From: Phaeosaccion multiseriatum
Taxonomy: Eukaryota; Protista; Ochrophyta, other classes
Length of the DNA: 64,000 bases
NCBI GenBank assembly: GCA_965112735.1
Contig: OZ218950.1
Span: 620,001 to 684,000, forward strand
Direction of reading: 5' to 3'
In this document: in pieces, positions 389 to 60,380 of the stretch
Position numbering within the stretch: position 1 is the first letter of the stretch
Layout: every line of letters begins with the position of its first letter
Position numbers and translations under genes: made by a program
Notes under the pieces: model-generated
Seen by the model: only the letters and a program-made list of their open reading frames with translations
The model's database searches: none
What the model was told of the DNA's origin: nothing

Positions 389-391
389 CAG

Positions 392-557: not shown

Positions 558-563
558 TCTTCC

Positions 564-1094: not shown

Positions 1095-1140
1095 ATGGAG
1101 GGACGGAGGGATGGAGGGGGGAGGAGGAGGAGGAGGAGGG

Positions 1141-3859: not shown

Positions 3860-4376
3860 TCTCACAACTCCGCGCCCTTCAAACAATCCTCCTTGCACCT
3901 CCTTCGCGTTTCTTCAAAACAATACAAGTGCTCCCCCGTGGACAAGAAGGCTCTTACAGCCCTTCCTTCACTGTCTGTCGTGGTCAAGAGAAGAGAGAGA
4001 AGTCGAATGCTTATGTGCCAAGTTCAAGGCCTCCAACCCGCGCATCGGCTGAAGACAAAGGAGGATAGATCCCCTTGCGTCCAGCCCAAGTCTTGGAGAA
4101 GAGGAGGAGAGAAGGTTGTAAAAGAGGATAATCAAAAGAGGGAAGAGAGGGGAAGATATTTCTTAAGGGATGGGAGGGAGAGAAACAAAAAACAAAATGA
4201 AGGCGCTTTATATTTTTCAATTTCAGCGTATTGGATCCTGGACGAGGAGCCCAGCTCGGAGTCCCACAGAGCTCCCCCCCGCAAACACTCTCCGAGGGGT
4301 TCGGGGCTTTACGAGGCCCAAAGACTGAGGACGATACAACGCTTGCCTTGTGTCAAGAACAAGAGCTTCCTCACAA

Positions 4377-5123
4377 CTACTCTTCCGGCTGCCCATCTGC
4401 TGCTACTGCCGCTGTATCACCAACTGCTGTGTCACCACCACTGGCGAGGGCGGCCTTGTGATCATGGAGGTGTATAACGGCCTTCCCGTCGTCCACGTGT
4501 CCCTTCATCAGGCAAATTACCTCCCCATGCGGCCACGTGTTGCTCAGACCGGCCACCAGCTGGGGCAGGATGGGATGGCAGTGGATGGGGATGACGGGAC
4601 CGGGGGGGGGGGGGGGAAGGGGAATCAAAGGGGGGCGGGGGGGGAGGGGCGAAGGAGAGAGAGGATGAGTGCTTTCACTTCGAGGTGGAAGAGAAGGACA
4701 TGGAGGGAGAGAGAGAGAGAGTTATCCCTCCATCATACAACTGCCGACGGCTTAGCGCTAAGCAGGTGGTGATACATAGCATATGTATAGTAGTTGGTGA
4801 TACATTACATGCGCTAACATGAGTCTACCCAGGCTTAAAGAAAGACTACATACCTCGCCAAGGAAGGAGCGCAACGCGGCCCCGCACGTACTTCCCGCGG
4901 GCCATCCACTGCCATCCCCCTCCCCCTTCTCCCCCTCCTCTTCCTCCTCCTGCTCCTCCTCCTCCTCCTCCTCCTCCTCCTCCTCCTCCTCCTCCTCCTC
5001 CTCCCCCGCCCCTGTGTCCACGCTCTCGGTGACCATGGTCTGTCCCCCCGCAGCAACGCTGTCGGCCACACGCGCGAGGGCTTCCCAGAAGTCGAACAGC
5101 GTCAGGACTCCGTTCTGGGGTGG

Positions 5124-5173
<50 letters not shown>

Positions 5174-7533
5174 AGACGACGCATGCCCCATGATTTGCAT
5201 GACATGCATAGATTCATTTAGGTTAGGGGTACAGCAGCAAGAATACTCATGAGGGGAGAAGTAAGGTTCCTCCCTCCCTCCCTCCCTCCCTCCCTCTCTC
5301 CCTCCCTCCCTCCCTCTCTCCCTCTCTCCCTCCCTCCCTCCCTCCCCTCCCTCCCCTCTCCTCCCCTCCCCTCCATCCCTCCCTCCCTCCCTCTCCCTCT
5401 CTCTCTCTCACCTCGTCTCTATCCCTAAGCTCGTCCACCACATAGAGCCTGCTTGCGAGGAAGCACTCCTTGGCCACACTCGGGTCCAAGCGGTCGGGGC
5501 CGATGCCTGCGTGGGCGAGTAAGCTGTGCAGCAGGTGGTGATACAGCAGTCACAGAACACGCACGAGACCAACGTTCAGCATACCATTCGATCCAATCAT
5601 TTCGAAGCAGGGCGAAGCAAGCAAGTGGGCAGGGCAGAGTAGCGATGAGCGGCAGGGGGGATTCAGAGCGGCTCTTTCACAGCTTTCAGAGCACATTCAC
5701 AGTGTCAGAGCCTCAGACTGCTCGACCGAAATGGTCTTGACACAAGCGGTCGCCTAAGGGTTTGAGTTTGAGTGTAAAGGAGGGAAGCGAAGCGGACACT
5801 GACACTGGCCGCTGGACATGACATGAGCACTGACACTGGCAGGCAACTGCCCCGGCCATTCCACGTTCCACTGGCACTGGGCCCTGGCACTGGCCAAGGC
5901 ACTGACACTGGACACTGACCTGCCCCAGTCCGTGAGTGAGAAGCGCTGCAGCACCTTTTTCACCACGCCGCGCCGCCGCCGGTCCATCTTCAGAGATAAA
6001 TTGTTGATAGGGTACACCTGTTGGTGATTCGCCATTCGGTTAGTCATTTGTTGGTTGGCTGGTTGGTCCTTCGGTTGGTGATTCGGATGGTCGCTTGTTT
6101 GTCTTTCGGGGTAAGCAAGTCGGCCTTGTACGGAGGACGCCACAGGATACACACACACACCCATTGACTCACTACCCACCCACCTACTGACTTGCTACAT
6201 ACCTTCCAGAGCGCCTCGACGAGTCCTCCGTGCTCTCTCATCACCTTGTCCTCCCCCCGTGTGTATAGCCTCGCCTCTCGGTAGGCGTCATGGTCGGCCT
6301 TTGCGCTGACGGGAAGGCGCTCCTCCATGCAACACAGCAGAGCTCGCAGGCCCTGCAGAAGGCTGCTTTGGCTCTGACTCTGGCTTGAGGGAGGGAGGCT
6401 GGAGCTGCTGCAGTTGCTGTTGTTGTTGTTGTTGGAGGTTACGATTCCTCCCTCTCCTCCTCCTCCTCCTCCTCCTCCCACTGCCTCTTCCCCTCCTTCT
6501 ACGGCTGCTGCTGCTGCTACTACCCCATTCGCCACCGACGCAGACGTGGATGTCCGGTTGGCTTTCAAGGCTGCCGCCTTCAAACCCCCTCCTCCTTTCT
6601 TGCTGGGCTGTTTCTGACTGCGGTAGATGGCAGCCGATGTGCGCACGAGCACCTCGAGCCATTGGTGCTCCAAGAGGTGGGCTTCAGAGAACTCCGCGAG
6701 GGTCTGAATGTCTTGGGTAGCCTCGCCGTCCTGGAGGGAGGGAAGGATGGAGGGGGGAGGAGGAGGAGGAGGAGGAGGAGGAGGAAGAGGAATGCGCGTG
6801 TAGAAGTGAGAGATTGGCGTTCGTGCGTGCGTGCGTGCGTGCGTGCGTGCGTGGGTCCTGACCTTGTTCATGACTGCGATGAAGACTCTCTCGAGCTCAT
6901 TGGCAAGCTGCTTGGGGGCCTCGGGACACACACACTGCGTGAACAGCAGGAACTGGGGGGGGTATGGCAGTGGATGGGGAGGAGGAGCAGCAGGAGGAGG
7001 AGCAGCAGTTGGTTATAGAGTTCCTTCCTTCCTTCCTTCCTTCCTTCCTTCCTTCCTTCCTTCCTTCCTTCCTTCCTTCCTTCCTTCCTTCCTTCCTTCC
7101 TTCCTTCCTTCTGTCACCTGCTCCCGACCATTTGATGTGCTCCCATCCACTGCCATCCCTCCCCCTGTCCACCCCTCTCCCTCCCTCCCCTCCCTCCCTC
7201 CCCTCCCTCCCCACCCTTCCTTCTCCCTCACCTGCTCGCGACTCAATTGACATGCTCCGGACACCGGCTCGCCCGTAGTGCCCCCTAAGCTCACAAAGTG
7301 ATCAAAGGTACTTAATATCATCTTGAACGAAGCCCTCAGCACCCCCTCCACCTCCATGGACTCCTCCTCCACGGTTGCCTCTCCACTCGAGACGCGCTTG
7401 TTGCCCGACGCCACGAACCTCCACCACCGATCGTGCATCAACACCCGGGACCAGGTCACTGTGAAACGGTGGGCCATGACCCCGTCGGCTCGGTTATACA
7501 CGTCACCCGCGCCTCTCTTGCACCCTCCTCCTC

Positions 7534-13010: not shown

Positions 13011-13800
13011 CTACTCTTCCGGCTGCCCATCTGCTGCTACTGCCGCTGTATCACCAACTGCTGTGTCACCACCACTGGCGAGGGCGGCCTTGTGATCATG
13101 GAGGTGTATAACGGCCTTCCCGTCGTCCACGTGTCCCTTCATCAGGCAAATTACCTCCCCATGCGGCCACGTGTTGCTCAGACCGGACACCAGCTGGGGC
13201 AGGATGGGATGGCAGTGGATGGGGATGACGGGACGGGGGGGGGGGGGCAAAGGGGAAACAACGGGGGGCGGGGTGAGTGCTTTAACTTCGAGGTGGAAGA
13301 GAAGGACATGGAGGGAGAGAGAGAGAGAGTTATCCCTCCATCATACAACTGCCGACGGCTTAGCGCTAAGCAGGTGGTGATACATAGCATATGCATAGTA
13401 GTTGGTGATACATTACATGCGCTAACATGAGTCTACCCAGGCTTAAAGAAAGACTACATACCTCGCCAAGGAAGGAGCGCAGCGCGGCCCCGCACGTACT
13501 TCCCGCGGGCCATCCACTGCCATCCCCCTCCCCCTTCTCCCCCTCCTCTTCCTCCTCCTGCTCCTCCTCCTCCTCCTCCTCCTCCTCCTCCTCCTCCTCC
13601 TCCTCCTCCTCCTCCTCCTCCTCCTCCTCCTCCTCCTCCTCCTCCTCCTCCTCCTCCTCCTCCTCCTCCTCCTCCTCCTCCCCCGCCCCTGTGTCCACGC
13701 TCTCGGTGACCATGGTCTGTCCCCCCGCAGCAACGCTGTCGGCCACACGCGCGAGGGCTTCCCAGAAGTCGAACAGCGTCAGGACTCCGTTCTGGGGCGG

Positions 13801-13864
<64 letters not shown>

Positions 13865-16159
13865 AGACGACGCATGCCCCATGATTTGCATGACATGCAT
13901 AGATTCATTTAGGTTAGGGGTACAGCAGCAAGAATACTCATGAGGGGAGAAGTAAGGTTCCTCCCTCCCTCCCTCCCTCCCTCCCTCCCTCCCTCTCTCC
14001 CTCTCTCCCTCCCTCCCTCCCTCCCCTCCCTCCCCTCTCCTCCCCTCCCCTCCCTCCCTCCCTCCCTCCCTCCCTCTCCCTCTCTCTATCTCACCTCGTC
14101 TCTATCCCTAAGCTCGTCCACCACATAGAGCCTGCTTGCGAGGAAGCACTCCTTGGCCACACTCGGGTCCAAGCGGTCGGGGCCGATGCCTGCGTGGGCG
14201 AGTAAGCTGTACAGCAGGTGGTGATACAGCAGTCACAGAACACGCACGACACCAACGTTCGGCATACCATTCGATCCAATCATTTCGAAGCAGGGCGAAG
14301 CAAGCAAGTGGGCAGGGCAGAGTAGCGATGAGCGGCAGGGGGGATTCAGAGCGGCTCTTTCACAGCTTTCAGAGCACATTCACAGTGTCAGAGCCTCAGA
14401 CTGCTCGACCGAAATGGTCTTGAGACAAGCGGTCGCCTAAGGGTTTGAGTTTGAGTGTAAAGGAGGGAAGCGAAGCGGACACTGACACTGGCCGCTGGAC
14501 ATGACATGAACACTGACACTGGCAGGCAACTGCCCCGGCCATTCCACAGGCACTGGGTCCTGGCACTGGCCAAAGCACTGACACTGGACACTGACCTGCC
14601 CCAGTCCGTGAGTGAGAAGCGCTGCAGCACCTTTTTCACCACGCCGCGCCGCCGCCGGTCCATCTTCAGAGATAAATTGTTGATAGGGTACACCTGTTGG
14701 TCATTCGCCATTCGGTTAGTCATTTGTTGGTTGGCTGGTTGGTCCTTCGGTTGGTGATTCGGGTGGTCGCTTGTTTGTCTTTCGGGGTAAGCAAGTCGGC
14801 CTTGTACGGAGGACGCCACAGGATACACACACACCCATTGACTCACTACCCACCCACCTACTGACTTGCTACATACCTTCCAGAGCGCCTCGACGAGTCC
14901 TCCGTGCTCTCTCATCACCTTGTCCACCCCCCGTGTGTATAGCCTCGCCTCTCGGTAGGCGTCATGGTCGGCCTTTGCGCTGACGGGAAGGCGCTCCTCC
15001 ATGCAACACAGCAGAGCTCGCAGGCCCTGCAGAAGGCTGCTTTGGCTCTGACTCTGGCTTGAGGGAGGGAGGCTGGAGCTGCTGCAGTTGCTGTTGTTGT
15101 TGTTGTTGTTGTTGGAGGTTACGATTCCTCCCTCTCCTCCTCCTCCTCCTCCCACTGCCTCTTCCCCTCCTTCTACGGCTGCTGCTGCTGCTACTACCCC
15201 ATTCGCCACCGACGTAGACGTGGATGTCCGGTTGGCTTTCAAGGCTGCCGCCTTCAAACCCCCTCCTCCTTTCTTGCTGGGCTGTTTCTGACTGCGGTAG
15301 ATGGCAGCAGATGTGCGCACGAGCACCTCGAGCCATTGGGGCTCCAAGAGGTGGGCTTCAGAGAACTCCGCGAGGGTCTGAATGTCTTGGGTAGCCTCGC
15401 CGTCCTGGAGGGAGGGAGGGATGGAGGGGGGAGGAGGAGGAGGAGGAGGAGGAGGAGGAGGAGGAGGAATGCGCGTGTAAAAGTGAGAGATTGGCGTTCG
15501 TGCGTGCGTGCGTGCGTGCGTGCGTGGGTCCTGACCTTGTTCATGACTGCGATGAAGACTCTCTCGAGCTCATTGGCAAGCTGCTTGGGGGCCTCGGGAC
15601 ACACACACTGCGTGAACAGCAGGAACTGGGGGGGGTATGGCAGTGGATGGGGAGGAGGAGCAGCAGGAGGAGGAGCAGCAGTTGGTTATAGAGCAGAGTG
15701 GAAACATACATCCCCTTTCCTTCCTTCCTTCCTTCCTTCCTTCCTTCTGTCACTTGCTCCCGACCATTTGATGTGCTCCCATCCACTGCCATCCCTCCCC
15801 CTGTCCACCCCACTCCCTCCCTCCCTCCCTCTCTCCCCACCCTTCCTTCTCCCTTACCTGCTCGCGACTCAATTGATATGCCCCGGACACCGGCTCGCCC
15901 GTAGTGCCCCCTAAGCTCACAAAGTGATCAAAGGTACTTAATATCATCTTGAACGAAGCCCTCAGCACCCCCTCCACCTCCATGGACTCCTCCTCCACGG
16001 TTGCCTCTCCACTCGAGACGCGCTTGTTGCCCGACGCCACGAACCTCCACCACCGATCGTGCATCAACACCCGGGACCAGGTCACTGTGAAACGGTGGGC
16101 CATGACCCCGTCGGCTCGGTTATACACGTCGCCGGCGCCTCTCTTGCACCCTCCTCCTC

Positions 16160-16533: not shown

Positions 16534-17954
16534 CTGGGAGGGGGGTGAACTTCAATCGGCCGTCTCTCTTCCCAGGGGGGCACGACAAAGCCGACGAAGG
16601 GGCAGGGAGGGGGGCGTGGCGCTCCCTCCCCACTCTCTCTACTGTCTCTCTTGTTGTGATGAGAGGAAGTCAGAGTGATAGAAGGAGCGCAGCGCGGCCC
16701 CGCACGTACTTCCCGCGGGCCATCCGCTGCCATCTCCCTCCCCCTCCTCCTCCCCCTCCTCCCCCGCCCCTGTGTCCATGGTCTATCCCCCCTCAGCAAC
16801 GCCCACACGGGCGAGGGATTCGAATGAACAACAGTGTGTCTATGGATGACTCAGGGATTAGTAGCAGCTCCTCTCACTCTCAGGAGGATGCTGGTGCCGG
16901 GCCCGTGCTGGGCGGTGCTGACTCGGAGTGAGCCCCTACCTCGCGCGAACGAAATCTTGAGCCCTCATTTACACTCTTGTTTGTAAAGAAACTCACCACT
17001 GCACGTGGAAATACATCAAAATTCACACACAGCACATTCAGAAGCTCCCAAGTCTCAGTTACTCGGCCCCTTCCACAGCAGTGAAGCGATGTGGGTGGCG
17101 ACTGTTTTCATCAAGGTCCATCACGTGTATTGACTTACTCTACTCTTCACGCCCATTGCACACACCAAGCCTCAAGCTTCACCACGGCGAAGGCGATACG
17201 GCGGACGGAAGGCCATCGGGTCACTAAATCCCAAGTCCCGAGGTATCAGCAGCAGGGCCCTCCACACGCACGCACGCTCGCAGCGCCTTCCGTCCGCGCC
17301 TCTTCTTCTCACTCGCCGTCACCATGCTCTCCTCCAGCACCGCCCACTCCTCCTTCAGCTTGTCGTCATTATCATCCTCCCCTACTCCTCCTGAGCGAAA
17401 GCGGTGGTAGGCAGACACAAAGCCTCGGATCGTGCTCTCCAGGCTCGCCCCCTTCCTCTTTGTGCGCACAGCGAGGTGGGGCAGCAGCAACACTTTACTC
17501 CGGCCCACAGCCACCACCACGCCGTTCGATAGCTCCCTGTCCCGACGGCCGCAGAAGGCCGTGACAGCATCAGCCCCGCCATCTTCCAGCCCTCTCCACA
17601 GGTCGCAGGGCACTTGAATCTCGTCCCCGACATGAAGCCCCAGCAAGCAAACCCACCCCATTCCCATCCTCCAGTGCCTCCTTCCTCTCCTCCCCTCCCC
17701 CAGCCATTGAAGGGGCGCATTTCGCCCTCTTCCTTCCTCTCCCATTGATGTCCGTCACAGCTCCTCGCTTGGGCACAGGCGTACAACGAGCAATCTCCTC
17801 CTTCTGCTCCGCTCCCTCCCTCTTCACTCGTGCATGCCTCTGGCACATCCCACCTTGCTTCCGAAGCTGCTCGCACCCCTCAACAGTACACCTCTTCGCC
17901 ACAGCTCCATGGGCCAGGCAAAGTCCTCCTCTGACACGATGCTTGTCGCACTCC

Positions 17955-18421
17955 CCCGGCACCGCCCCTCTGACGGTGCCGCGCACACTCCAACCCACCC
18001 GATTCTCTATCTCCCCGCGGTAGATACCAATGGGTATCCCTCGAATATCTCCCCACTGAGTCCACCAGTCCCCCGGGGCGGGTGGGTGGGAGAAGATTCA
18101 CCGCGTTAGCTGCTTTCAGGGCAGCGACTCCTATCCTCACTTCCACTCCACCGCACCACACCACGGACCTCTTATGCCACACCCTCAAGTTTCTAAACCT
18201 CCCCCTCCCTTGCCAGTCCGTGAAAAGTCGTTTTCCCACCGGGGTACGAAAACTCCCCTTTCACGGCCTTCTCGGTCGGGTACCTCCCCACATTCACAAA
18301 TGCCCACACAATAGTATTACAATTAGGTAAAAGGGGGTACTTGCCAGTCGGAAGTTAGAGAGGAGGACGAGTCTTTGCGCACCCGGCACCGCCCCTCTGA
18401 CGGTGCCGCGCACACTCCAAC
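17955..18421 (-). repeat. Ngaro-like split direct repeats (B1-A2-B2) at the 3' end of the first copy; same arrangement at 20387-20882
   Basis: A ~70-bp block gttagagaggaggacgagtctttgcgcacccggcaccgcccctctgacggtgccgcgcacactccaac occurs at ~18353-18421, 20387-20455 and 20813-20882, and partially at 17955-17994. It contains the stem cggcaccg/cggtgccg. Confidence 0.75.
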
Positions 18422-18503
18422 TCAACTGGAATTCCAGTCCCTCAACTCGTCCCTCCGGCTCGCCTCTCCCCCCCATCACCTTCCCCTCCCCCCCACTATC
18501 CCA

Positions 18504-19724
18504 TTACACTCCGCATCCCCAGTCTTTGTCTGCCCCCGCCTCCTTCACCCCCAAACCCTGGTCCCACATCCTCGCCCCCCCTACTGTAACAATATCCCCC
18601 CTTCGCGCTAGTATCTCCGACACCCTATCCGACTCCTGCACGTTCGGCCGGATGTACCGCATGAACGCCTTGCTCTTCCACCTCCCTTCCACTTGAATCG
18701 TCGAATCTGACGCCCCCCTTGCTGCTAGTGTCGTTGCACCCCCAACACGAAAAGAATGCAGCGCATGTCCTGAGGGATCAAGTCCCAAGGCCGACCCCAC
18801 CCTCCTCATCTCCTTCGAGACCTCCGTCCGTTTGAAGCACGTCCAGCCGCCCTTACCCCACCACGCTGACAGTGGCAGCGTGCCCGTGACCTGACCCCTC
18901 CCTTCGCCTTCGTCCTGTAAGTCCAAGACGCGCTGAATAAGCTCCAAGGCCCCTTTTCCCTTGTCCACTCGCCTCCTACACAGCACCGCTCCCACCCTCA
19001 TCTGATCGCCCTTTGACCCTTTGAATCGTATCTCCACCCTGTCCGCCATGTGCCGGTACTTCAATGTGACTCTGCAGCTCCCCTTGAAGAAGTGGAGATC
19101 CTCTCGCGTCAGACCAAAAGTTGGATGGACCTTCCCCGTTTCATCGTAACCCCACAGTTCACTGGCACGTAGCAGAAAGAAGTAGGATAGACCCATACCA
19201 CACCACATTGCCTCCCCTCTCACCCCCACACCCACATTCCCCTCCACTGACTAGAGCATGTCCCACGTGAACGGCTGTCGCACGGTGTTCATCCCCTTGC
19301 TCCCCATCCCCTGTTGCCTCTTCATTCCCTTCTTCGTCGCAGCCACCAGATAATGTGAGGTCGGCAGCTCCACACCCCTCATCATCCGGTGGTAGTACGC
19401 CACTCCCGAGATTTTCGATGCCACCGTGTCGACAGCATCTCCCATCTCCGCGAATCGGTATGCAGCGAACGCCGAAACAATCTCAGCTGCACGACCTTCG
19501 TCCACATTCTTCTCAATCCACACCCCCATCCCCACCGCTTCACAGTACTTCACCCACGCCCTCCAATGTGACGTATATGCTCCTTGAGACCCCGGCGCAA
19601 TTGCTGCTCGTGCATACTGTCGCGCAAGGTCCGTGTACAAAGCTCGTTTGCCTCCTTCCCCAGCTCCAAGCGCCGCCAGCTCCTCCCCCCTTTGCCCCTT
19701 GCTCGTTGATCCTCTGAATTGCAC
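18504..19724 (-). pseudogene. DIRS-type tyrosine recombinase with an in-frame TAG at 19251-19253
   Basis: ORFs 19251-19724 (N-terminal SQGAYTSHWRAWVKYC...) and 18504-19247 (catalytic domain) share one frame. Confidence 0.88.
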
Positions 19725-20260
19725 TCAGATTATCTCCCCTGGCCAACACCGGTGCTCCCTTCTTCTCCCCCTTGATCCCCAACTGAACCACCACCAGCTC
19801 CGCCATCACCACCATCGCCAACAGTTCCAGGAGGTTGATTGACACCCTCCGATGATTGGCCAGCTTGTCTCCACCATCACCCTCCTCCCCCACGAAACGT
19901 CCTTCCATGCTCACTCCGTCGACCTCCTCCATCCCCAACCTCCACCACCAGCCCAGCTCCTCACAATAGCCTCCAATTGCCTGCTTTGATGCGTCCGTGT
20001 ACCACGCCATCACCGAACCACTTCCCACTCTCCAGCGCCACCATCACTTGCCGAAAAGCTGACTTGACATCCAGTTTGCTCAAGACGATGTGCTGCCCCG
20101 GGTATTTCGCCCGAAGACACCACACCAGCTCGATGAGAGCCCGAAGTACCCCGCCGCACAAGCTCTCGGGCAAACTATCCGCCGACGACCGAGCATTGAT
20201 GCTCGCCGCGCCAAAAGTCAGGTTCCGAGCCTTCCCCTCTTCCCACCGTCGCTGCATGCT
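19700..20260 (-). pseudogene. Internally deleted DIRS RT / RNase H remnant
   Basis: LPESLCGGVL...KLDVKSAFRQV is joined by deletion to WYTDASKQAIGGY...INLLELLAMV...GDNLSAI. Confidence 0.8.
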
Positions 20261-20966
20261 AGTCAACACGCCTGAGCTCCCACCCCAATGCCCCCTGCAC
20301 CAGGCCCCTCCCCAGTACCCACTGTACCAAGGCCCACAGACCGCACCCCAATGCTCCCTGCACCATGCCACGCCCCAGTACCGACGAGTTAGAGAGGAGG
20401 ACGAGTCTTTGCGCACCCGGCACCGCCCCTCTGACGGTGCCGCGCACACTCCAACCCACCCGATTCTCTATCTCCCCGCGGTAGGTACCAATGGGTACCC
20501 CTCGAATATCTCCCCACTGAGTCCACCAGTCCCCCGGGGCGGGTGGGTGGGAGAAGATTCACCGCGTTAGCTGCTTTCAGGGCAGCGACTCCTATCCTCA
20601 CTTCCACTCCACCGCACCACACCACGGACCTCTTATGCCACACCCTCAAGTTTCTAAACCTCCCCCTCCCTTGCCAGGCCGTGAAAAGTCGTTTTCCCAC
20701 CGGGGTACGAAAACTCCCCTTTCACGGCCTTCTCGGTCGGGTACCTCCCCCCATTCACAAATGCCCACACAATAGTATTACAATTAGGTAAAAGGGGGTA
20801 CTTGCCAGTCGGAAGTTAGAGAGGAGGACGAGTCTTTGCGCACCCGGCACCGCCCCTCTGACGGTGCCGCGCACACTCCAACTCAACTGGAATTCCAGTC
20901 CCTCAACTCGTCCCTCCGACTCGCCTCTCCCCCCCCATCACCTTCCCCTCCCCCCCCACTATCCCA

Positions 20967-22049
20967 TTACACTCCGCATCCCCAGTCTTTGTCTGCCCCC
21001 GCCTCCCTCACCCCCAAACCCTGGTCCCACGTCCTCGCCCCCCCTACTGTAACGATATCCCCCCTTCGCGCTAGTATCTCCGACACCCTATCCGACTCCT
21101 GCACGTTCGGCCGGATGTACCGCATGAACGCCTTGCTCTTCCACCTCCCTTCCACTTGAATCGTCGAATCTGACGCCCCCCTTGCGGCTAGTGTCGTAGC
21201 ACCCCCAACTCGAAAGGAATGCAGCGCATATCCTGATGGATCAAGTCCCAAGGCCGACACCACCCTCCTCATCTCCTTCGAGACCTCCGTCCGTTTGAAG
21301 CACGTCCAGCCGCCCTTACCCCACCACGCTGACAGTGGCAGCGTGCCCGTGACCTGACCCCTCCCTTCGCCTTCGTCCTGTAAGTCCAAGACGCGCTGAA
21401 TGAGCTCCAATGCCCCTTTTCCCTTGTCCACTCGCCTCCTACACAGCACCGCTCCCACCCTCATCTGATCGCCCTTTGACCCTTTGAATCGTATCTCCAC
21501 CCTGTCCGCCATGTGCCGGTACTTCAACGTGACTCTGCAGCTCCCCTTGAAGAAGTGGAGATCCTCTCGCGTCAGACCAAAAGTTGGATGGACCTTCCCC
21601 GTTTCATCGTAACCCCACAGTTCACTGGCACGTAGCAGCAAGAAGTAGGATAGACCCATTCCACACCACATTGCCTCCCCTCTCACCCCCACACCCACAT
21701 TCCCCTCCACTGACCTCTTCCGTACTACCACAGCTCCATGGGCCTGGCAAAGTCCTCCTTGGACCCGTACCTTATCGCACCCCTCAACAGTACACCTCTT
21801 CCGTACCACCACCGCTCCGTGCCCTTTGCAAAGTCCTACCCGTTGCGACTCCTTCTCGCACCCCTCAACAGTACACCTCTTCCGCACAGCTCCATGGGCC
21901 TGGCAAAGTCCTCCTTGGACCCGTACCTTATCGCACCCCTCAACAGTACACCTCTTCACGACAGCCCCGTGGGCCACGCAAAGTCCTCCTTGGACCCGAT
22001 GCTTGTCGTACACCAGCCAGCAGACAGCGAGACCATCAGCACACAGCAT
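20967..22049 (-). CDS. Chimeric ORF: zinc-finger repeats fused in frame to a complete tyrosine-recombinase catalytic domain
   Basis: Continuous ORF ...AHGAVVVRKR|SVEGNVG...LLRASEL...SKGDQ...YALHSFRVGG...GRWKS...RYIRP. In-frame ATG at 22049. Expression is not shown. Confidence 0.55.
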   Translation of the reverse strand: MLCADGLAVCWLVYDKHRVQGGLCVAHGAVVKRCTVEGCDKVRVQGGLCQAHGAVRKRCTVEGCEKESQRVGLCKGHGAVVVRKRCTVEGCDKVRVQGGLCQAHGAVVVRKRSVEGNVGVGVRGEAMWCGMGLSYFLLLRASELWGYDETGKVHPTFGLTREDLHFFKGSCRVTLKYRHMADRVEIRFKGSKGDQMRVGAVLCRRRVDKGKGALELIQRVLDLQDEGEGRGQVTGTLPLSAWWGKGGWTCFKRTEVSKEMRRVVSALGLDPSGYALHSFRVGGATTLAARGASDSTIQVEGRWKSKAFMRYIRPNVQESDRVSEILARRGDIVTVGGARTWDQGLGVREAGADKDWGCGV

Positions 22050-22321
22050 AGCAACCACAGTTAGTCACGCCTTGTCACCCGCACCACCCACAGTAGGCTA
22101 GTTCACATATCACCTCCACCACCTCACTCCTTCCCACACCCCTTCATCTCCTCCTCCCCCCTTCACTCCCTTCCCATTCCCCATTATCCTCTACTCTACC
22201 ACCCTTACCATCCTCTTCCCCTCCACCTCACGCTCCATCAATACCACACATACACGCATCTACACATGGTTACAACTTACCTCGAGCGCTCCAATACTGA
22301 GCCCATAAGCTCTAATATACA
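22009..22321 (+). mobile_element. Severely 5'-truncated CRE-like non-LTR copy (3' UTR only), TSD TGTCG
   Basis: Identical to ~59986-60298. tgtcg at 22004-22008 and 22322-22326. Confidence 0.92.
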
Positions 22322-23253
22322 TGTCGCACCCCTCCACAGAACACCCCTTCACCACAGCCCCGTGGGCCAGGCAAAGTCCTCCCTGCTTCGGTTGCTTGTC
22401 GCACCCCTCAACAGTACACTTCTTCCGCACAGCTCCATGGGCCACGCAAAGTCCTCCTTGGATCCGCCGCTTGTCGCACCCCTCAACAGTACACCTCTTG
22501 GTCACAGCCCCGTGGGCCACGCAAAGTCCTCCTTGGATCCGCAGCTTGTCGCACCCCTCAACAGTACACCTCTTCACCACAGCTCCATGGCCCTGGCAAA
22601 GTCCTCCTTGGATCCGATGCTTGTCGCACCCCTCAACAGTACAACTTTTCACCACAGCTCCATGGGCCTGGCAAAGTCCTCCCTGTCGCGACTGCTTCTC
22701 GCACCCCTCAACAGTACACCCCTTCCGCATTCTCACAACTCCGCGCCCTTCAAACAATCCTCCTTGCACCTCCTTCGCGTTTCTTCAAAAGCATATACGC
22801 CCACCCCCGTGGACAAGAAGGCTCTTACAGCCCTTCCTTCACTGTCTGTCGTGGTCAAGAGGAGAGAGAGAAGTCGAATGCTTATGTGCCAACTTGAAGG
22901 CCTCCAAGCCCGCGCATCGACTGAAGACAAAGGAGGATAGATCCCCTTAGGCCCAGCCCAAGCGGTCTTGGAAAAGAAGAGGACAGAAGGTTGTAAAAGA
23001 GAATATTCAAGACCGGGATGTGAGGGGAATACACTTCTTAGGGAGGAGAGGGAGAGAAAGAAGGATGTGTGAAGGCCGGGGCCCAGGAACATGCGATCTA
23101 GTTTCAGTTTCAGCTTAGTGGATCTGGACGAGGAGCTCAGCTCGGAGTCCCACAGAGCAAACACTCCCGACGGGTTCTTGGGGCTTTACGAGGCCCAAAG
23201 ACTGAGGACGATACAACGCTTGCCTTGTGTCAAGAACAAGAGCTTCCTCACGA

Positions 23254-24132
23254 CTACTCTTCCGGCTGCCCATCTGCTGCTACTGCCGCTGTATCACCAA
23301 CTGCTGTGTCACCACCACTGGCGAGGGCGGCCTTGTGATCATGGAGGTGTATAACGGCCTTCCCGTCGTCCACGTGTCCCTTCATCAGGCAAATTACCTC
23401 CCCGTGCGGCCACGTGTTGCTCAGACCGGCCACCAGCTGGGGCAGGATGGGATGGCAGTGGATGGGGATGGAGGGGGGGGGGGGGCAAAGGGGAAATAAA
23501 GGGGGGCGGGGGGGGAGGGGCGAAGGAGAGAGAGAGTGAGTGCTTTAACTTCGAGGTGGAAGAGAAGGACATGGAGGGAGAGAGAGAGAGAGTTATCCCT
23601 CCATCATACAACTGCCGACGGCTTAACGCTAAGCAGCTGGTGATACATAGCATATGCATAGTAGTTGGTGATACATTACATGCGCTAACATGAGTCTACC
23701 CAGGCTTAAAGAAAGACTACATACCTCGCCAAGGAAGGAGTGCAGCGCGGCCCCGCACGTACTTCCCGCGGGCCATCCACTGCCATCCCCCTCCCCCTTC
23801 TCCCCCTCCTCTTCCTCCTCCTCCTCCTCCTCCTCCTCCTCCTCCTCCTCCTCCTCCTCCTCCTCCTCCTCCTCCTCCTCCTCCTCCTCCTCCTCCTCCT
23901 CCTCCTCCTCCTCCTCCTCCTCCTCCTCCTCCTCCTCCTCCTCCTCCTCCTCCTCCTCCTCCTCCTGCTCCTCCTCCTCCTCCTCCTCCTCCTCCTCCTC
24001 CTCCTCCTCCTCCCCCGCCCCTGTGTCCACGCTCTCGGTGACCATGGTCTGTCCCCCCGCAGCAACGCTGTCGGCCACACGCGCGAGGGCTTCCCAGAAG
24101 TCGAACAGCGTCAGGACTCCGTTCTGGGGTGG

Positions 24133-24202
<70 letters not shown>

Positions 24203-26557
24203 AGACGACGCATGCCCCATGATTTGCATGACATGCATAGATTCATTTAGGTTAGGGGTACAGCAGCAAGAATACTCATGAGGGGAGAAGTAAGGTTCCT
24301 CCCTCCCTCCCTCCCTCCCTCCCTCCCTCCCTCTCTCCCTCCCTCCCTCCCTCCCTCCCTCCCTCCCTCCCTCCCTCCCTCCCCCCCCCCCCCCTCTCCC
24401 TCTCTCTCTCTCACCTCGTCTCTATCCCTAAGCTCGTCCACCACATAGAGCCTGCTTGCGAGGAAGCACTCCTTGGCCACACTCGGGTCCAAGCGGTCGG
24501 GGCTGATGCCTGCGTGGGCGAGTAAGCTGTGCAGCAGGTGGTGATACAGCAGTCACAGAACACGCACGACACCAACGTTCAGCATACCATTCGATCCAAT
24601 CATTCCGAAGCAGGGCGAAGCAAGCAAGTGGGCAGGGCAGAGTAGCGATGAGCGGCAGGGGGGATTCAGAGCGGCTCTTTCACAGCTTTCAGAGCACATT
24701 CACAGTGTCAGAGCCTCAGACTGCTCGACCGAAATGGTCTTGAGACAAGCGGTCGCCTAGGTTTGAGTTTGAGTTTAAAGGAGGGAAGCGAAGCGGACAC
24801 TGACACTAGCCGCTGGACATGACATGAGCACTGACACTGGCAGGCAACTGCCCCGGCCATTCCACGTTCCACTGGCACTGGGTCCTGGCACTGGCCAAGG
24901 CACTGACACTGGACACTGACCTGCCCCAGTCCGTGAGTGAGAAGCGCTGCAGCACCTTTTTCACCACGCCGCGCCGCCGCCGGTCCATCTTCAGAGATAA
25001 ATTGTTGATAGGGTACACCTGTTGGTCATTCGCCATTCGGTTAGTCATTTGTTGGTTGGCTGGTTGGTCCTTCGGTTGGTGATTCGGGTGGTCGCTTGTT
25101 TGTCTTTCGGGGTAAGCAAGTCGGCCTTGTACGGAGGACGCCACAGGATACACACACACACACCCATTGACTCACTACCCACCCACCTACTGACTTGCTA
25201 CATACCTTCCAGAGCGCCTCGACGAGTCCTCCGTGCTCTCTCATCACCTTGTCCACCCCCCGTGTGTATAGCCTCGCCTCTCGGTAGGCGTCATGGTCGG
25301 CCTTTGCGCTGACGGGAAGGCGCTCCTCCATGCAACACAGCAGAGCTCGCAGGCCCTGCAGAAGGCTGCTTTGGCTCCGACTCTGGCTTGAGGGAGGGAG
25401 GCTGGAGCTGCTGCAGTTGTTGTTGTTGTTGTTGTTGTTGGAGGTTACGATTCCTCCCTCTCCTCCTCCTCCTCCTCCCACTGCCTCTTCCCCTCCTTCT
25501 ACGGCTGCTGCTGCTGCTACTACCCCATTCGCCACCGACGTAGACGTGGATGTCCGGTTGGCTTTCAAGGCTGCCGCCTTCAAACCCCCTCCTCCTTTCT
25601 TGCTGGGCTGTTTCTGACTGCGGTAGATGGCAGCAGATGTGCGCACGAGCACCTCGAGCCATTGGGGCTCCAAGAGGTGGGCTTCAGAGAACTCCGCGAG
25701 GGTCTGAATGTCTTGGGTAGCCTCGCCGTCCTGGAGGGAGGGAGGGATGGAGGGGGGAGGAGGAGGAGGAGGAGGAGGAGGAATGCGCGTGTAAAAGTGA
25801 GAGATTGGCGTTCGTGCGTGCGTGCGTGCGTGCGTGCGTGGGTCCTGACCTTGTTCATGACTGCGATGAAGACTCTCTCGAGCTCATTGGCAAGCTGCTT
25901 GGGGGCCTCGGGACACACACACTGCGTGAACAGCAGGAACTGGGGGGGGTATGGCAGTGGATGGGGAGGAGGAGCAGCAGGAGGAGGAGCAGCAGTTGGT
26001 TATAGAGCAGAGTGGAAACATCCCCTTTCCTTCCTTCCTTCCTTCCATCCTTCCTTCCTTCCTTCCTTCCTTCCTTCCTTCCTTCCTTCCTTCCTTCCTT
26101 CCTTCCTTCCTTCCTTCCTTCCTTCCTTTCTTCTGTCACTTGCTCCCGACCATTTGATGTGCTCCCATCCACTGCCATCCCTCCCCCTGTCCACCCCACC
26201 CCTCTCCCTCCCTCCCTCCCTCCCTCTCTCCCCACCCTTCCTTCTCCCTCACCTGCTCGCGACTCAATTGATATGCCCCGGACACCGGCTCGCCCGTAGT
26301 GCCCCCTAAGCTCACAAAGTGATCAAAGGTACTTAATATCATCTTGAACGAAGCCCTCAGCACCCCCTCCACCTCCATGGACTCCTCCTCCACGGTTGCC
26401 TCTCCACTCGAGACGCGCTTGTTGCCCGACGCCATGAACCTCCACCACCGATCGTGCATCAACACCCGGGACCAGGTCACTGTGAAACGGTGGGCCATGA
26501 CCCCGTCGGCTCGGTTATACACGTCACCCGCGCCTCTCTTGCACCCTCCTCCTCCTC

Positions 26558-28684: not shown

Positions 28685-28870
28685 TGTTGCGATATCTCCT
28701 CTACGATGACAGGGACAAGCTAGAGTAGTGTCAACTCGTGTATTAATAATACCTACTGAGAGATGCGTTCAAGGAAGTGATGGCCGTGGCCATACATGAA
28801 CATCGATATCCACATCGATATTGTACGTCGATATAGTGCTCAGTCACAAATGGCGATACTTATCACAACA
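28685..28870 (-). repeat. Copia 3' LTR (186 bp)
   Basis: Identical by eye to 33903-34088. A short purine tract aggaggg precedes it on the minus strand. Confidence 0.95.
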
Positions 28871-29007
28871 CCCTCCTATGACTGAATCACTATCTCTCTT
28901 GATAGCTGACACTCTACCACAAACACGATGAGGAAACACCTGACTTGCCCTAAAACCCCCCCGAGACAAAGTCCTGAAAACCTCATACTAAAACTACTGA
29001 ACTAAAA

Positions 29008-32000
29008 CTAGTCCCCCCCTTTCCTGTCTCCCTTCTTGAGCATCTGCCCCGCCAGACCGCTGTGTACCTGAGGTGCCAATGCCTTGGTCATGATGTCCCC
29101 AAGCTGGTCCTTTGTGCTGATGTACTGAAACCGAACGTGTCCCTTGTCCACGTGGTACTGCAGGAAATGATAACGAATGTCGATGTGACGTACGCGCTTG
29201 GTGCCCGCGTTGCCATTTGCCATCTGAATGCACCCTTGATTGTCCTCGTGCACAATCGACTCCGTCATGTTGGCTCCTGGAAACAGAAACTCCAGAATCC
29301 CTCTGTGAAACAGCAACTCCTTCACTGCTTCCGCTGCGGCCATGTACTCACTCTCCATAGAGCACTGTGCTATGACCTTAAATAGTGTTGCCTTGTGAGC
29401 AATCACTCCCCCGCCGAATGTCACGACGTATCCCCCTGAGCTCCTGCGCCTGTCGACGTCATCTGCCCAGCTCGAGTCTGCGTATGCCTCCAGATGAAGC
29501 CCCGCCTCTCGATCAAACTCAATTCCCAAGTCTAAACTACCTCTAAAGTACCCGAAAATGCGCTGCAATGCTGCCCAGTGTCGAGGCCCCGGCCTCTTCA
29601 TAAAACGAGCACACTGCATGATGGCGAAGGATACATCAAGCCTCACCCAGTTGGCAACCCATAGGATTGACCCTACCGCTGAGCAGTATGGTTTGTCCTG
29701 CATGAATTCCTCCTCCTCTGTGGTGCTTGGCTCCATACCCACTGACAAATGTACCCCCTGCTCTGCTGGTGAGCCGTACACAGGTACCTCCGTCATGTCG
29801 AACTTCTCAAGCATCGCTCTAAGATACCCTCCTAGCGAAAGCCTGAGCTGTCCCGCCTCGAATGCGTAGTCAACTTCAACTCCCAGAAATTTCCCCACAT
29901 TCGACCCCAAACGCTTCAACTTGAAACGCTCGTCAATCTCCTTGAAAGTGCAGTCAATGAGATTTCCCTCCCCTGACCCTCCTAGGTCGTCTACATATAG
30001 AATGATGAGCCCTATTAGCTCCCCCTCCTCGAACCTGGCGAACAGACACGGATCCACTGGGCACTGTACCCACCCCATTGCGAGTAGAAATGCCACCACT
30101 GTCTCGTTCCACCTCTTGGGAGACTGATGAAGACCGTACAGACTCTTCAACAGCCTCAGCACCTTCCCGAACTTTCTCATGCCCTCTGGTGCTCTAATGT
30201 ACACGTACTCCCCCTCATGCAGAGGTGCATGCAGGAAAGCCGTCTCCACATCTGCAAACTCCAATACCCACTTCTTCTGGCACGTGATAGCAAAGAACAT
30301 CTTCATCGTCGAGCTCCCCACCACTGGTGCAAAGGTATCAAAGTAATCCTCCCCCTCGATCTGCTCGTTCCCCATCACGACAAATCGACACTTGAGCCTA
30401 TCCACAAGTCCCCCAGTCACCTTTGCTCTGAATAGCATGACTGTATGCAGCACATTCATCCCCTCTTGATAATCAACCTCCTCCCATACCTGGCGTTGCT
30501 CGATCGCGTTGAGCTCTGCCCAGTACGCCTCCGTCCATTGCTCCGCGTACTCTCCTGCTTGAGCCTGGGCCAGAGACCGCGGTATCGGTACCTCGCTCTC
30601 CTTTAGGCCTGGCATCAGAAAGAGTGGGCCTAGTATGGAGGAGACAGCATGTCAGTGCTTGCCGCTACGCGTGCGGCCCAGGCTGGGATCGTGGCCCCAG
30701 TCGTGCTCCTTGGCTCCCTTGTCGCCATCTTTGGCCACCTCGTATGTCCAGAGTTTGCCTCTCTCTGGCGGCTCAGCCTGCTGCGTTGGCTCTTCCTGCT
30801 GCTGCTCTGCCTGTTGCTGCTCTGCCTGCTGCTGCTGCTGCTCTTGCTGCTCTACTTGCTGTTTCTGCTGCTCTCTCTGTTGCTGCTTTGCCGTCTGCTC
30901 CCTCTGTTGCCGCTCGGCGTGCTGACGTCGCTCCAGGCCTTCTCCTTCGAGTTGTAACTTCTCCACGAACTCTCGGGTGAGAACCTGTTCCCAGCGTGAT
31001 GTCTGTTGCTGCTGTGGGGCTGGCTGTGCCTCCTCTAATCTCGTGTTCCATGTGACGGTTCCACTCTTGGTCCCGCCCCCACCTCCCCCGCTCGCGCTAC
31101 TGCTGCTGCTCCTGCTGCTGCTCCTGCTGCTGCTCCTGCTGCTGCTCCCGCTGCTCGAGGGCTGGTCCTCGTCCTCGCTGTCATCCTCCTTCTCCGCTGT
31201 CTCTGGTAGCTTCCCCTTCTCCACGTGACTCCCGAACACCGTGCCGTCGTGTCTGCGGTTCGTCACGAATGTGTAGGACGAGCTGGAGATGAACCGCTTC
31301 TGTGAAGGGATGTAGAAAAGGAGACAGGCTGATCTGTGGTTGGGGCTCTGTCCCACGTACACTGCCGAGTGCGTCTTGTCGTTGTGCCACTGCTTGTGCT
31401 TCTTGTTGCCCACCCGCACCTTCGCCTGCTCTCCGAAGATGTGTAGGTGCTGTAGGTCAGGCTTGCGCTTGAAATACAGCTCGTAGGGGGACTGCTGCTG
31501 CCCCCTCCTGCACCTGGTGTTGTAGAGAAGCTGCGCCAACTTGTACGCTACGAACCTCAGCTGCTTCGAGTGCTCCTCCAGCTTCGCCTCCTCAATGAAA
31601 AGAATAGACATTCGCGCCAGCTCCTTGTGTCGAGCCTCGTTCAGTCCGTTCTGCGCTTGACAATTGGGGTCCGTCAGCTTGACCTCAATGCCCTGGGAGT
31701 AGAGCATCTTCTTCGCTGCCTTCGTCTTGATGAGCTCCGATCCGTTGTCTGCTGACAGACACTGCACCTTGTACCCCGCTGTCCTCTCCCCTGGAATGAA
31801 TACTGTGGTGTTGAGGTCGTCATACACGCTCTGGAAGTGCGCCTCCGTCTTTCCCCCCACCTTCCTGCACCAGCCCATACCCGTGTGCGGGCAGCACGCC
31901 TGCAACACGTGCTCTCCTTCGAGAGGAATGGTGTCGAGCGTTACCTGTGCCAGCGGTGCCTTGGGGTAGTCGATGAACTGCTTACTCTGAGCTGCCTTCG

Positions 32001-33789
32001 TCATCTTCACCTCTGCGCAAGTCTTGCACGGCGCCCTCTTCCCGCACAGTGTCACGCCCTCCAGCTTGGCCTGTCGCCGTAGTTCTTGATCGTTGCGGTG
32101 GCCCTTCTTGCAGTGGTAAGTCATGTAATCACTCCACTGCTCCGTGGCCTCCTCGATCTTGAATTGTAGCATGTCAAGCCCCAGCTCTGGGTCCTGCGTC
32201 GTGTGCACCGTCTCTGGTGCGTCTGCTGAGGGGCCGAAATAGACTGGCTTCCCCGCTGGCCTTGCGCTCCCCCCAGTAGGTCTGAGAGGTTCTTCTCTGC
32301 AAAAATGCAGAAAGGTACGTCTGGCGACACCACTACCTCCAGCCCCTTCAGTCCTCTTTTGCCGTCGTTGGAGACGTAGCTGATGTTCACCTTCCCTTTG
32401 CCCATTATCTGCGCGTGCGACTTGCCGTCTGCGAGTTGCACTAAACTCTGATGAGCGCAGAAATCGTACAGTCCATCCAAGTTGGGCCACACATTGAGCG
32501 CCGATCCGCTGTCTGCGAGCCCCTGCCGTGTGCCATCCGCCCCCGACTTCAGCTTGGACATATGGTAGAGAGAATGGCCGCTCCCCCTCTCCTGTAGCGT
32601 CCACGGAATGCTGAAAATGGCGCTGGTGGAGCCTTCCACATGCTCGCCATCTTTCTTCTTCCTGCTGTTTGGGCAGTCTGCACGCTGGTGCCCCGGCTTG
32701 TGGCAGTTGAAACACAGCTCCTCCTTGGACGGACACGTCGTCCGCATGTGCCCCTTTCTCCCACACCTGTAACAGCGTGTGTTGGACCGATCTTTCTCTC
32801 CTGCCCCTGTGGTGGTCTGTCTACCCCCCTGCTGGTTGCTGTGTCTTCTGCCTTTGCTGGTAAATGTGGAAAAGGCCCCGCTCAAGGTCCTCTCCCGCCT
32901 CCCTCGCTTGCGCTTGGAGGTCACTGTCAAACCGCTGCACTTGCTGTTTGAACCGATTAAACTCGTCCTCTGTCTCTACCGAATGACCGTGCACTTGGCC
33001 GAACGACTCCCATCTCTGCCCCATACGCCTGAGGAACTTGTCCTTGATGATGGAGTAGGACATAGGAAGCTGCTCCTCCGTCATCAACACGTTGAGTTGG
33101 AGAAACTTGTTGAGGTAGGCAAGTCCCGTCTCCCCCACCCCTGGCCTCAGATCGTGCATCTCGGAGGTGAGAAACTCTTGTCGCTGTGACTGCGTGCTCC
33201 CCATCACTGCCTCCTTGATTGCCTGCATCAATAGTACCAGGTCCACTTGGAACCGCGCTGTGCGAGTGCGTTCTTCTATGGCATCCCTCATGTCCGAGGG
33301 AATGGCCTCCAAAATCTTGAGGCCCGTCTGTTGGTACAGACTGAACGTCAGGGCATACTTAGAGTCCCGGGAGGCGTCGTCTGCGTTGGGGATCTTATCA
33401 CTATCCACCAAGAATGCCTTTGCCCCCATCCCCCCTATGTGATCCGTGACCGCTCGCATAAATCGCAAGAGAGGCATCACTCCCTCCGATTCCAACTTCT
33501 TGTCAAACTCATTGTTCTTCGGCTTGAACGTGAGTTCTAGCAGCTGCTGTGCTGTACTCCCCCCCCCGCTGGGGGTCACTGTTCCTCCGACTGAGGAGAT
33601 AGTGACTGGTGCTGCGGCCGCTGCCGTGGGCACTCCTTGCTGTGTGATGTGTTTGGCCAACGCTGCCGCTATCATCTTTTCCATCATTTCAGCCATCTGC
33701 TGCTGTGCGTCTCCTTCTATCGCGGAACTCGCACTGACGGGCGCCGCTGCGTCCGCCTTTTCAACGCCTTCTTCTTCCGCGCCTGGCAT
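29008..33789 (-). CDS. Copia gag-pol polyprotein, broken by two frameshifts (~32830-32900 and ~32275) and an in-frame TGA at 30652-30654
   Basis: ORF pieces 32821-33789 (gag), 32121-32930 (knuckles, protease), 30652-32766 (integrase) and 29008-30615 (RT-RH). The last two are in the same frame. Confidence 0.88.
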
Positions 33790-33902
33790 GGCTAACGAAA
33801 GGACTCCTTCTCTCTCACTTGAGTTATCCGACCAAAACTCGCCTGTGTGCCGTCGCCGACTACGTAGAACCAGCTAGCTGTGAAGTGTCGCGACAGCTGT
33901 CG

Positions 33903-34088
33903 TGTTGCGATATCTCCTCTACGATGACAGGGACAAGCTAGAGTAGTGTCAACTCGTGTATTAATAATACCTACTGAGAGATGCGTTCAAGGAAGTGATG
34001 GCCGTGGCCATACATGAACATCGATATCCACATCGATATTGTACGTCGATATAGTGCTCAGTCACAAATGGCGATACTTATCACAACA
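33903..34088 (-). repeat. Copia 5' LTR (186 bp)
   Basis: Identical by eye to 28685-28870. Confidence 0.95.
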
Positions 34089-34775
34089 ACACCTCTTCCG
34101 TACCACCACAGCACCGTGGGCCACGCAAAGTCCTCCTTGGACCCGATGCTTGTCGCACCCCTCAACAGTACACCTCTTCATCACAGCTCCATGGCCCTTG
34201 CAAAGTCCTCCCCGTTGCGAATGCTTCTCGCACCCCTCAACAGTACATCTCTTCCGCATTCTCACAACTCCGCGCCCTTCAAACAATCCTCCTTGCACCT
34301 CCTTCGCGTTTCTTCAAAAGAATACAAGTGCTCCCCCGTGGACAAGAAGGCTCTTACAGCCCTTCCTTCACTGTCTGTCGTGGTCAAGAGAAGAGAGAGA
34401 AGTCGAATGCTTATGTGCCAAGTTGAAGGCCTCCAACCCGCGCATCGGCTGAAGACAAAGGAGGATAGATCCCCTTGCGTCCAGCCCAAGCGGTCTTGGA
34501 GAAGAGGAGGAGAGAAGGTTGTAAAAGAGGATAATCAAAAGAGGGAAGAGAGGGGAAGATATTTCTTAAGGGATGGGAGGGAGAGAAAGAAGGATGGGTG
34601 AAGGGGGGGAATCGGAAATCGAGTTTCAGTTTCAGCGTATTGGATCTGGACGAGGAGCCCAGCTCGGAGTCCCACAGAGCAAACACTCCCGACGGGTTCT
34701 TGGGGCTTTACGAGGCCCAAGGACTGAGGACGATACAATGCTTGCTTTGTGTCAAGAACAAGAGCTTCCTCACGA

Positions 34776-60298: not shown

Positions 60299-60380
60299 TC
60301 TCGCACCCCTCAACAGTACACCTCTTCACCACAGCTCCGTGGGCCTGGCAAAGTCCTCCTTGGATCCGATGCTTGTCGCA

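Follow-up and report, generated by a model that had tools for sequence, protein, structure and literature searches.

An in-frame fusion of zinc fingers and a tyrosine recombinase in the alga Phaeosaccion multiseriatum, probably an accidental by-product of retroelement insertion

Background

When a mobile element joins an array of zinc fingers to the part of a tyrosine recombinase (YR) that holds the catalytic residues, in a single open reading frame, is the result a gene or merely an open frame? The question is raised by a locus in the alga Phaeosaccion multiseriatum, where the reading frame of a WRKY19-type finger array on the minus strand continues into the catalytic part of a recombinase. 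The original prediction for this DNA saw in it a natural mimic of engineered zinc-finger recombinases and allowed, as a fallback, for a chance in-frame product without function. Our analysis of the locus leads us to regard the fusion frame as an accident, produced when a retroelement inserted into a gene copy that is redundant, and most probably not as a functional gene. Coordinates throughout are positions of the window, the whole 64,000-nt stretch of DNA that was analysed.

Engineered zinc-finger recombinases draw their catalytic part from serine recombinases (Gin, Hin, Tn3 resolvase), whose catalytic domains are modular by nature, and pair it with C2H2 fingers that have a known DNA code. 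The catalytic domain of a tyrosine recombinase normally needs its own N-terminal domain to clamp the DNA and to build the synapse. Like the engineered proteins, the algal fusion would have fingers guide a recombinase, but its enzyme part comes from a tyrosine recombinase and its fingers are of the WRKY19 type, whose DNA binding is putative; the analogy is accordingly a loose one.

The closest natural analogues of the architecture are found elsewhere. WOC and ZMYM2/3/4 (DUF3504) arose by domestication of Crypton recombinases (Kojima and Jurka 2011, PMC3212892), and share with the fusion the order of N-terminal zinc fingers and a C-terminal YR-derived domain. These genes are ancient, conserved across animals and expressed, and their catalytic Y and R have been lost (PMC3212892). 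The fusion, in contrast, is a single young locus with intact catalytic residues, and its YR part comes from a retroelement rather than from a Crypton.

Results and discussion

The fusion reading frame

The open reading frame at 20967..22058 (minus strand) encodes 363 amino acids from a GTG codon, or 360 from an ATG at 22049. Three and a half WRKY19-type fingers are followed in it by the YR catalytic region (20967..21713, minus strand; 248 codons and a stop), which is also the start of a longer repeat, referred to here as P. The passage from fingers to recombinase lies at 21714/21713 and reads ...AVVVRKR, then SVEGNVG...; both the in-frame transition, which the original prediction had placed at about 21713, and the open 360-residue version from ATG 22049 are thereby confirmed. 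That the frame would continue at this point has a chance of 1 in 3; in the two alternative frames, stops follow after 9 and 29 codons. The 360-residue frame starts within antisense sequence of a CRE-like element, and no entry was found when its exact product was looked up in the records.

The CRE-like sequence is the 5'-truncated 3' end (313 bp) of a non-LTR retrotransposon, located at 22009..22321 (plus strand), where it interrupts the finger array and divides five upstream fingers from the remainder. It is 97% identical to 59985-60382 and 61015-61412, the CRE sense strand being the plus strand. As had been proposed for a later CRE arrival, it is flanked by a target-site duplication (TSD), the 5-bp CGACA at 22322-22326 and 22004-22008 (minus strand). 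If the fragment and one TSD copy (318 bp) are left out, 482 codons without an internal stop are obtained; this reading begins MRKGCT at 22730 and comprises 481 amino acids with nine finger motif matches, exactly the nine-finger version that had been put forward.

The insert that carries the fused recombinase also holds a 'sister' copy of the recombinase region (17955-19251). Homology between the fusion copy and the sister starts at G21714/T21713, directly past a TAG at 19253-19251 in the sister, in accordance with the claim that the break sits just beyond the sister's nonsense codon. Other genomic copies read CAA (glutamine) at this codon, and a second sample has CAA only, so the TAG is a private nonsense change. 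The position of the break, 1 nt from the sister's TAG where other copies read CAA, is a coincidence that we counted against an accidental origin. A splice origin of the junction was also considered, the finger (AAGAG|GT) and the sister (CTCTAG|) being donor-like and acceptor-like, and was rejected because the junction carries a base more than a canonical splice would leave.

The interrupted zinc-finger gene

The finger half of the fusion belongs to a tandem gene family on the minus strand, with at least nine members at a period of 5.5-8 kb and an identity of 92-97%. Six paralogues have open frames of 322-474 amino acids, which start MRK(R/G)CTVEGC, contain 4-10 fingers and, in each of the six, carry a conserved C-terminal tail of about 200 residues. 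The fingers of the fusion locus are repeated C-x4-C...C-x2-H units, assigned by Pfam to Zf_WRKY19 (PF24906) with 71.1 and 116.4 bits against a cut-off of 27.

Three pieces of the interrupted member can be delimited. Its 5' part (22322..22730, minus strand) holds the ATG at 22730 and five WRKY19-type fingers (Pfam 4.2e-34 for ORF 22260..22769); the remaining fingers, one partial and three more, occupy 21714..22008 (minus strand; Zf_WRKY19, 6.6e-20) and end ...VVVRKR. From the alignment of the six paralogues, the stranded 3' part (17224..17954, minus strand) contains the rest of the interrupted finger, one more finger, the terminal finger and the conserved tail, from which the insert separates the host gene. 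The frame of this tail is shifted by a private 5-bp deletion after 17645, found in this copy alone among the seven aligned. On these comparisons, the interrupted host appears to be a redundant gene copy in decay.

The finger repeat collects three classes of retroelement. Besides the YR element, these are CRE-like elements, with further non-LTR copies from 53553 onward, and a Copia element at 28700-34090 (TSD GGTGT).

The recombinase-bearing insert

The insert that brought in the recombinase spans 17955-21713 (minus strand), and in its 3,759 bp a unit of 2,461 bp is present 1.53 times. On the minus strand the order is P, Q, P', with P and P' spaced by 2461/2463 bp and 98.3% identical. P (21713 to 20416) consists of the YR catalytic region and 551 bp of non-coding sequence (20416..20966, minus strand), in which repeat comparison identified a 72-nt repeat, R, at 20814-20885. 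Q (19251..20415, minus strand) is the unique part of the unit and ends in the TAG at 19253-19251. It contains the rest of a second copy of R (R2, 20387-20458), a reverse transcriptase (RT) fragment (20206-19997), an RNase H fragment (20013-19705) and the YR N-terminal domain (19724-19254), as located by tblastn with ORF2 and ORF3 of L001, a related metagenomic element. P' (17955..19250, minus strand), the sister copy, comprises a YR catalytic region (19250-18507), R at 18353-18424 and, at its end, the first 43 nt of a further R copy (17997-17955). The four R copies are spaced by 427 and 2034, and R holds a 7-bp inverted repeat around a 9-nt spacer, an arrangement resembling a recombinase site.

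L001 provides a measure of what the unit lacks. It encodes an ORF1 of 355 amino acids, a 722-residue ORF in which YVDD and an RNase H motif are found, and a YR ORF of 343 amino acids that overlaps the RT/RNase H frame; Atlas neighbours carry RVT_1. Apart from the YR N-terminal domain, the similarity of Q to L001 is confined to residues 163-241 and 517-613 of the 722-residue frame, and by the same comparison ORF1 and the RT core (YVDD) are absent from the 2,461-bp unit. The RT and RNase H remnants had no match in Pfam and are recognised only through L001. Since ORF1 and the RT core are missing, the insert is, to judge from its sequence, a dead deletion derivative of a DIRS-order YR retrotransposon.

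In common with DIRS-order elements (Ngaro-, PAT- and VIPER-like; PMC6681497), the insert retains RT, RNase H and YR remnants in the order seen in L001, together with candidate A-type repeats. It differs from intact members of the order in being a 2.46-kb deletion derivative, present as 1.53 units, with non-terminal ends and with B1/B2 not found. Ngaro-like split direct repeats have A1 at the 5' end and B1, A2 and B2 at the 3' end (PMC6681497); the R copies are compatible with A1/A2 of this pattern, and no B1/B2 pair was detected by eye or by repeat search. 'Ngaro' is thus at most a plausible label for the element. An LTR-like reading of P-Q-P' was discarded, as TG...CA ends, a purine tract before P' and a TSD are all lacking.

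Mode of entry

Upstream of the insert the finger stops at ...GGAAGAG, and downstream it is picked up at GG(A)GTGCGAC, so that 12-15 bp of the target finger have been lost; no TSD surrounds the insert at 17955-21713. Neither end of the insert is an element terminus, the 5' end lying in the linker of the recombinase gene and the 3' end 43 nt into the 72-nt R. The 5' junction displays a 2-nt microhomology (GT). At the 3' junction, the continuation of R and the finger at the break share the 7-nt identity GGGTGCG, for which about 3% of unit positions qualify, and the joint is not seamless, containing 4 extra or mutated bases. Because the flanks are the halves of one finger and are collinear with the paralogues, 21713 would be the original insertion junction, not the end of a later large deletion.

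The two ends correspond to different positions of the unit, which rules out that the element's recombinase made the insert in a single exchange. Simple integration of a monomeric or multimeric circle by the YR was rejected on the same ground, and survives only as part of a two-step history. There, a multimeric circle would have been integrated at R by its own YR, and about 1.16 kb plus a few finger bases would have been deleted later, in frame by chance. Circles are the presumed integrating form of DIRS-type elements (PMC6681497), R with its inverted repeat and spacer resembles a recombinase site, and the finger holds a similar GAGGGG/TGCG stretch; yet the right junction falls outside the spacer and is not seamless as YR exchange predicts, the insert ends differ in unit position, and two events are needed where one suffices. 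We consider this history unlikely.

Under the accidental origin that we prefer, a piece of a YR element landed inside one finger of one member of the tandem family, its 5' end falling in frame by chance. Multimeric, more-than-unit-length RNA or cDNA would have entered by end-joining or by target-primed reverse transcription, and not through the element's own recombinase. The point of entry may have been a break made by the endonuclease of a CRE-like element, whose target this finger is. Within the finger unit, the 3' junction of the insert and the 5' junction of the full-length CRE copy are 1 nt apart. The recombinase half, young and still open, gave rise to the frame of zinc fingers and YR catalytic region. 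Since the insertion, the cut-off tail has gained its frameshift, and the CRE fragment later split the upstream fingers.

A more specific version of this entry, in which the RNA of the YR retrotransposon was copied in by the endonuclease and reverse transcriptase of a CRE-like element at its target site, must be called doubtful. Its appeal lies in the likeness to trans-mobilisation by non-LTR machinery (processed-pseudogene-like insertions, R2/CRE-type target-primed capture), with which the insert shares 5' truncation, an arbitrary 3' start by short identity and a small target deletion. It departs from non-LTR capture in that there is no poly(A), a more-than-unit-length template is required, the orientation is opposite to that of the CRE copies and the 3' junction is unseamless; the last two points were counted against the priming model.

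An assembly artefact, whether a mis-join at 21713 or a collapsed or expanded repeat behind P-Q-P', is in our judgement very unlikely. The region is crowded with nested 75-bp repeats and retroelements, and the patchy differences between P and P' could reflect polishing with reads of other copies. Moreover, the Logan contigs listed are too short to bridge 21713, and support for the junction therefore comes from the assembly and from internal consistency, namely that the two flanks are halves of one finger. However, finger and element share 2 nt only, leaving an assembler nothing on which to mis-join, and the flanks of the insert rebuild that finger, less the lost bases, collinearly with the paralogues. 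No joint or loose end at 21713/21714 occurs among the contigs shown, and read depth is present in 30 of 30 bins for X1, X2 and X4. Among the short read contigs listed, none has a joint that skips exactly 22009-22321, or the 318 bp that include one TSD copy.

The recombinase half

In alignments with 7, and then 36, database relatives, LLRASE, GSKGDQ, HSFRVGG, GRW and FMRYIR of the fused half fall on the R, K, H, R, W and Y columns that are almost invariant in the family, in support of the claim that the catalytic R, K, H-x-x-R, W and Y have been kept. The family profile matches Cre residues 280-339 (E=1e-7), a segment that covers H289, R292, W315 and Y324. With Pfam PF00589, the fused YR scores 16.3 bits and the sister 17.5 bits, both below the gathering cut-off of 27.1; the family is divergent, and the homologues P0004 and P0007 likewise miss this cut-off. 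Xer, Cre and lambda Int are structural matches (Z of about 15) of the AlphaFold model of full-length P0004, which has a pLDDT of 84. With the nearly invariant columns, the match to Cre and the P0004 model, the assignment of the fused half as a recombinase is sound.

What the fusion has discarded is equally telling. The fusion point corresponds to residue 102 of P0004, and isolated catalytic domains of solved structure (lambda Int core, XerD C-domain, P2 Int, Flp, topoisomerase IB) have their alignments to the model start at residues 88-93; helix 97-102, the first of the catalytic domain, is therefore lost. The break had been predicted to remove the YR N-terminal domain. The whole of that domain is indeed gone, and with it the first catalytic helix, so that the fused frame falls short of the two-domain YR fold. 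A fusion protein, if made, would be without its clamp-forming N-terminal domain as well as this helix, and is unlikely to recombine DNA.

Divergence between the two copies

The coding parts of P and P' differ by 10 synonymous and 5 non-synonymous changes, which gives a dN/dS of 0.15 (p=6e-4). Taken at face value, this ratio means purifying selection, and it was counted against an accidental origin along with the retention of every catalytic residue. At 5.8%, synonymous divergence exceeds the non-coding divergence of the P/P' repeat (about 0.9%) some sixfold, and a stretch of 74 bp (21259-21186) holds 7 of the 15 coding differences. From read contigs it is evident that the genome contains additional copies of this family, some of them with the P state at P/P' differences, and three of the five amino-acid differences of the fused copy show a state shared by other genomic copies. 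For the second sample (X5), no contigs specific to P were shown.

A comparison of the fused YR with free copies had been suggested as a check; that with the sister yielded the low ratio that selection would give, but selection in place was rejected as its main cause, since synonymous divergence far exceeds non-coding divergence and the differences are clustered. The value of 0.15 is best explained by divergence before insertion, while the element was mobile, by conversion from other copies, or by polishing with reads of other copies.

Relatives, expression and function

A HMMER scan of 1.84 billion representatives returned 7,293 hits, from which 155 proteins were retrieved (the best 150 together with the hits of the first search). 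None of these 155 best retrieved proteins contains both domains, 119 being finger-only and 36 YR-only, and the seven hits of a word search were YR-only as well; the combination of fingers and integrase domain that was to be sought in the databases therefore has no counterpart in this set. No RNA run holding the stretch was found, so the junction has gained no RNA support, which is weak evidence. Compared with domesticated YR genes of the ZMYM/WOC kind, the fusion is without a relative of shared architecture among the 155 and, more weakly, without an RNA run that holds it.

Could the chimera nonetheless be an expressed and selected gene, in which the finger array has taken the place of the recombinase's DNA-binding domain and directs cleavage or recombination, or binding only? 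We hold this to be highly improbable. Its two halves are in frame, but the nine-finger frame is broken by the CRE fragment and the 360-residue version begins in antisense CRE sequence; all catalytic residues are retained, but the first catalytic helix and the entire N-domain are missing. The low dN/dS would favour it, were it not that the synonymous excess over non-coding sequence and the clustering of the differences fit conversion or pre-insertion divergence. Natural proteins with zinc fingers and a YR-derived part do exist in ZMYM2/3/4 and WOC (PMC3212892), yet these domesticated examples have lost catalytic residues and are conserved across phyla, the opposite of the pattern seen here, where neither a two-domain protein among the 155 best retrieved nor an RNA run holding the stretch came to light. 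Still less credible is the proposal that the fused gene, or an allele elsewhere in the population that is free of CRE, is expressed as a working tyrosine recombinase or nickase under zinc-finger guidance, which would amount to natural retargeting of a YR by a variable array of fingers.

The dead element, the broken and decayed host copy, the lost helix and the lack of architecture relatives among the 155 best retrieved proteins favour the fallback of the original prediction, a chance in-frame product without function. The same points, along with the lack of an RNA run that holds the stretch, speak against its principal claim of a natural mimic of engineered zinc-finger recombinases.

Conclusions

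The fusion frame resembles other gene fusions made by transposable elements (exonisation, gene-TE fusion pseudogenes), in which a chance frame extends a host exon and the redundant copy decays. It differs from the typical case in that the element part is the catalytic half of a YR with all active-site residues, and the host part a tandem finger array. In one respect it is ordinary, a further in-frame fusion of gene and transposon in a redundant, insertion-riddled family, and nothing indicates that it is used. For genome engineering, a functioning finger-guided tyrosine recombinase would, if true, be of importance; nothing at the locus supports one. The frame does exemplify the raw material for proteins that combine a DNA-binding array with a recombinase, as in ZMYM/WOC. 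The more instructive part is the mode of insertion: the anatomy of the insert bears on how YR retroelements enter genomes without their own recombinase, and on why the finger repeat of this alga gathers three classes of retroelement.

Structure and termini of the YR element

The insert in the zinc-finger gene, 1.53 units of a defective DIRS-order tyrosine recombinase (YR) retrotransposon at 17955-21713, carries four occurrences of a 72-nt repeat, R (17955-17997, 18353-18424, 20387-20458 and 20814-20885). Within R lies a 7-bp inverted repeat, GGCACCG / CGGTGCC, whose arms are separated by the 9-nt spacer TCAGAGGGG; this structure could be the recombination site of the element or, alternatively, an RNA 3'-end hairpin. 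The insert terminates 3 nt beyond the inverted repeat, and a similar GTCAG..GAGGGG opens it at its 5' end.

The metagenomic contig L001 (JGI 3300045993; 1-5435) holds a related element that looks complete and is flanked by CAG/CAA repeats. Its ORFs encode ORF1 (355 aa), an RT/RNase H (722 aa) and a YR (343 aa), the last of these overlapping the preceding RT/RNase H ORF by 4 nt. Pfam RVT_1 gives no match to the 722-aa RT/RNase H ORF, though the YVDD motif is present.

Where the sister copy has its in-frame TAG codon (19251-19253), 1 nt from the boundary of homology between the two copies in the insert (P and P'), other copies of the YR element in the genome have CAA (Gln). At this same codon CAA accounts for about half of the read depth in sample S1 and for all of it in sample S2, and paired variants occur nearby at 19282/19284 and 19314.

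The interrupted gene and the inter-gene spacers

The interrupted zinc-finger gene carries a private 5-bp deletion at 17644-17645, within the conserved C-terminal tail, which shifts the frame; the missing bases are GCGGG in all six of the paralogues compared. In the copy fused to the YR, one finger (21826-21900) reads ESQRVGLC: the first Gly of its GGLC motif, conserved elsewhere, is changed to Val, which may point to relaxed constraint. The inter-gene spacer at 23629-24250 and its paralogous counterpart at 13470-14100 contain long microsatellites, both GAG/GAA (poly-Glu) and (GT)n, which give rise to spurious long ORFs in all frames.

Other retroelements in the finger arrays

The CRE fragment at 22009-22321, taken with its flank (22008-22405), matches at 97% head-to-tail repeats within 59350-61417, each consisting of a CRE 3' end and an 84-bp finger piece (59350-60387 and 60380-61417 are 100% identical). 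The 5' junctions of CRE fall at slightly differing finger bases, directly following TGTCG, TGTCGCACC or TCGCACCCCT. A different zinc-finger array is interrupted by a Ty1/Copia-type LTR retrotransposon (28700-34090) with a 5-bp TSD, GGTGT, and LTRs that start with TGTTG and end with CAACA; its ORFs of 322, 704 and 535 aa include among their products an integrase and an RT with YVDD. By position in the finger unit, the Copia insertion point is a few bases from the 5' junction of the YR element. Three classes of retroelement are inserted into zinc-finger arrays of the window.
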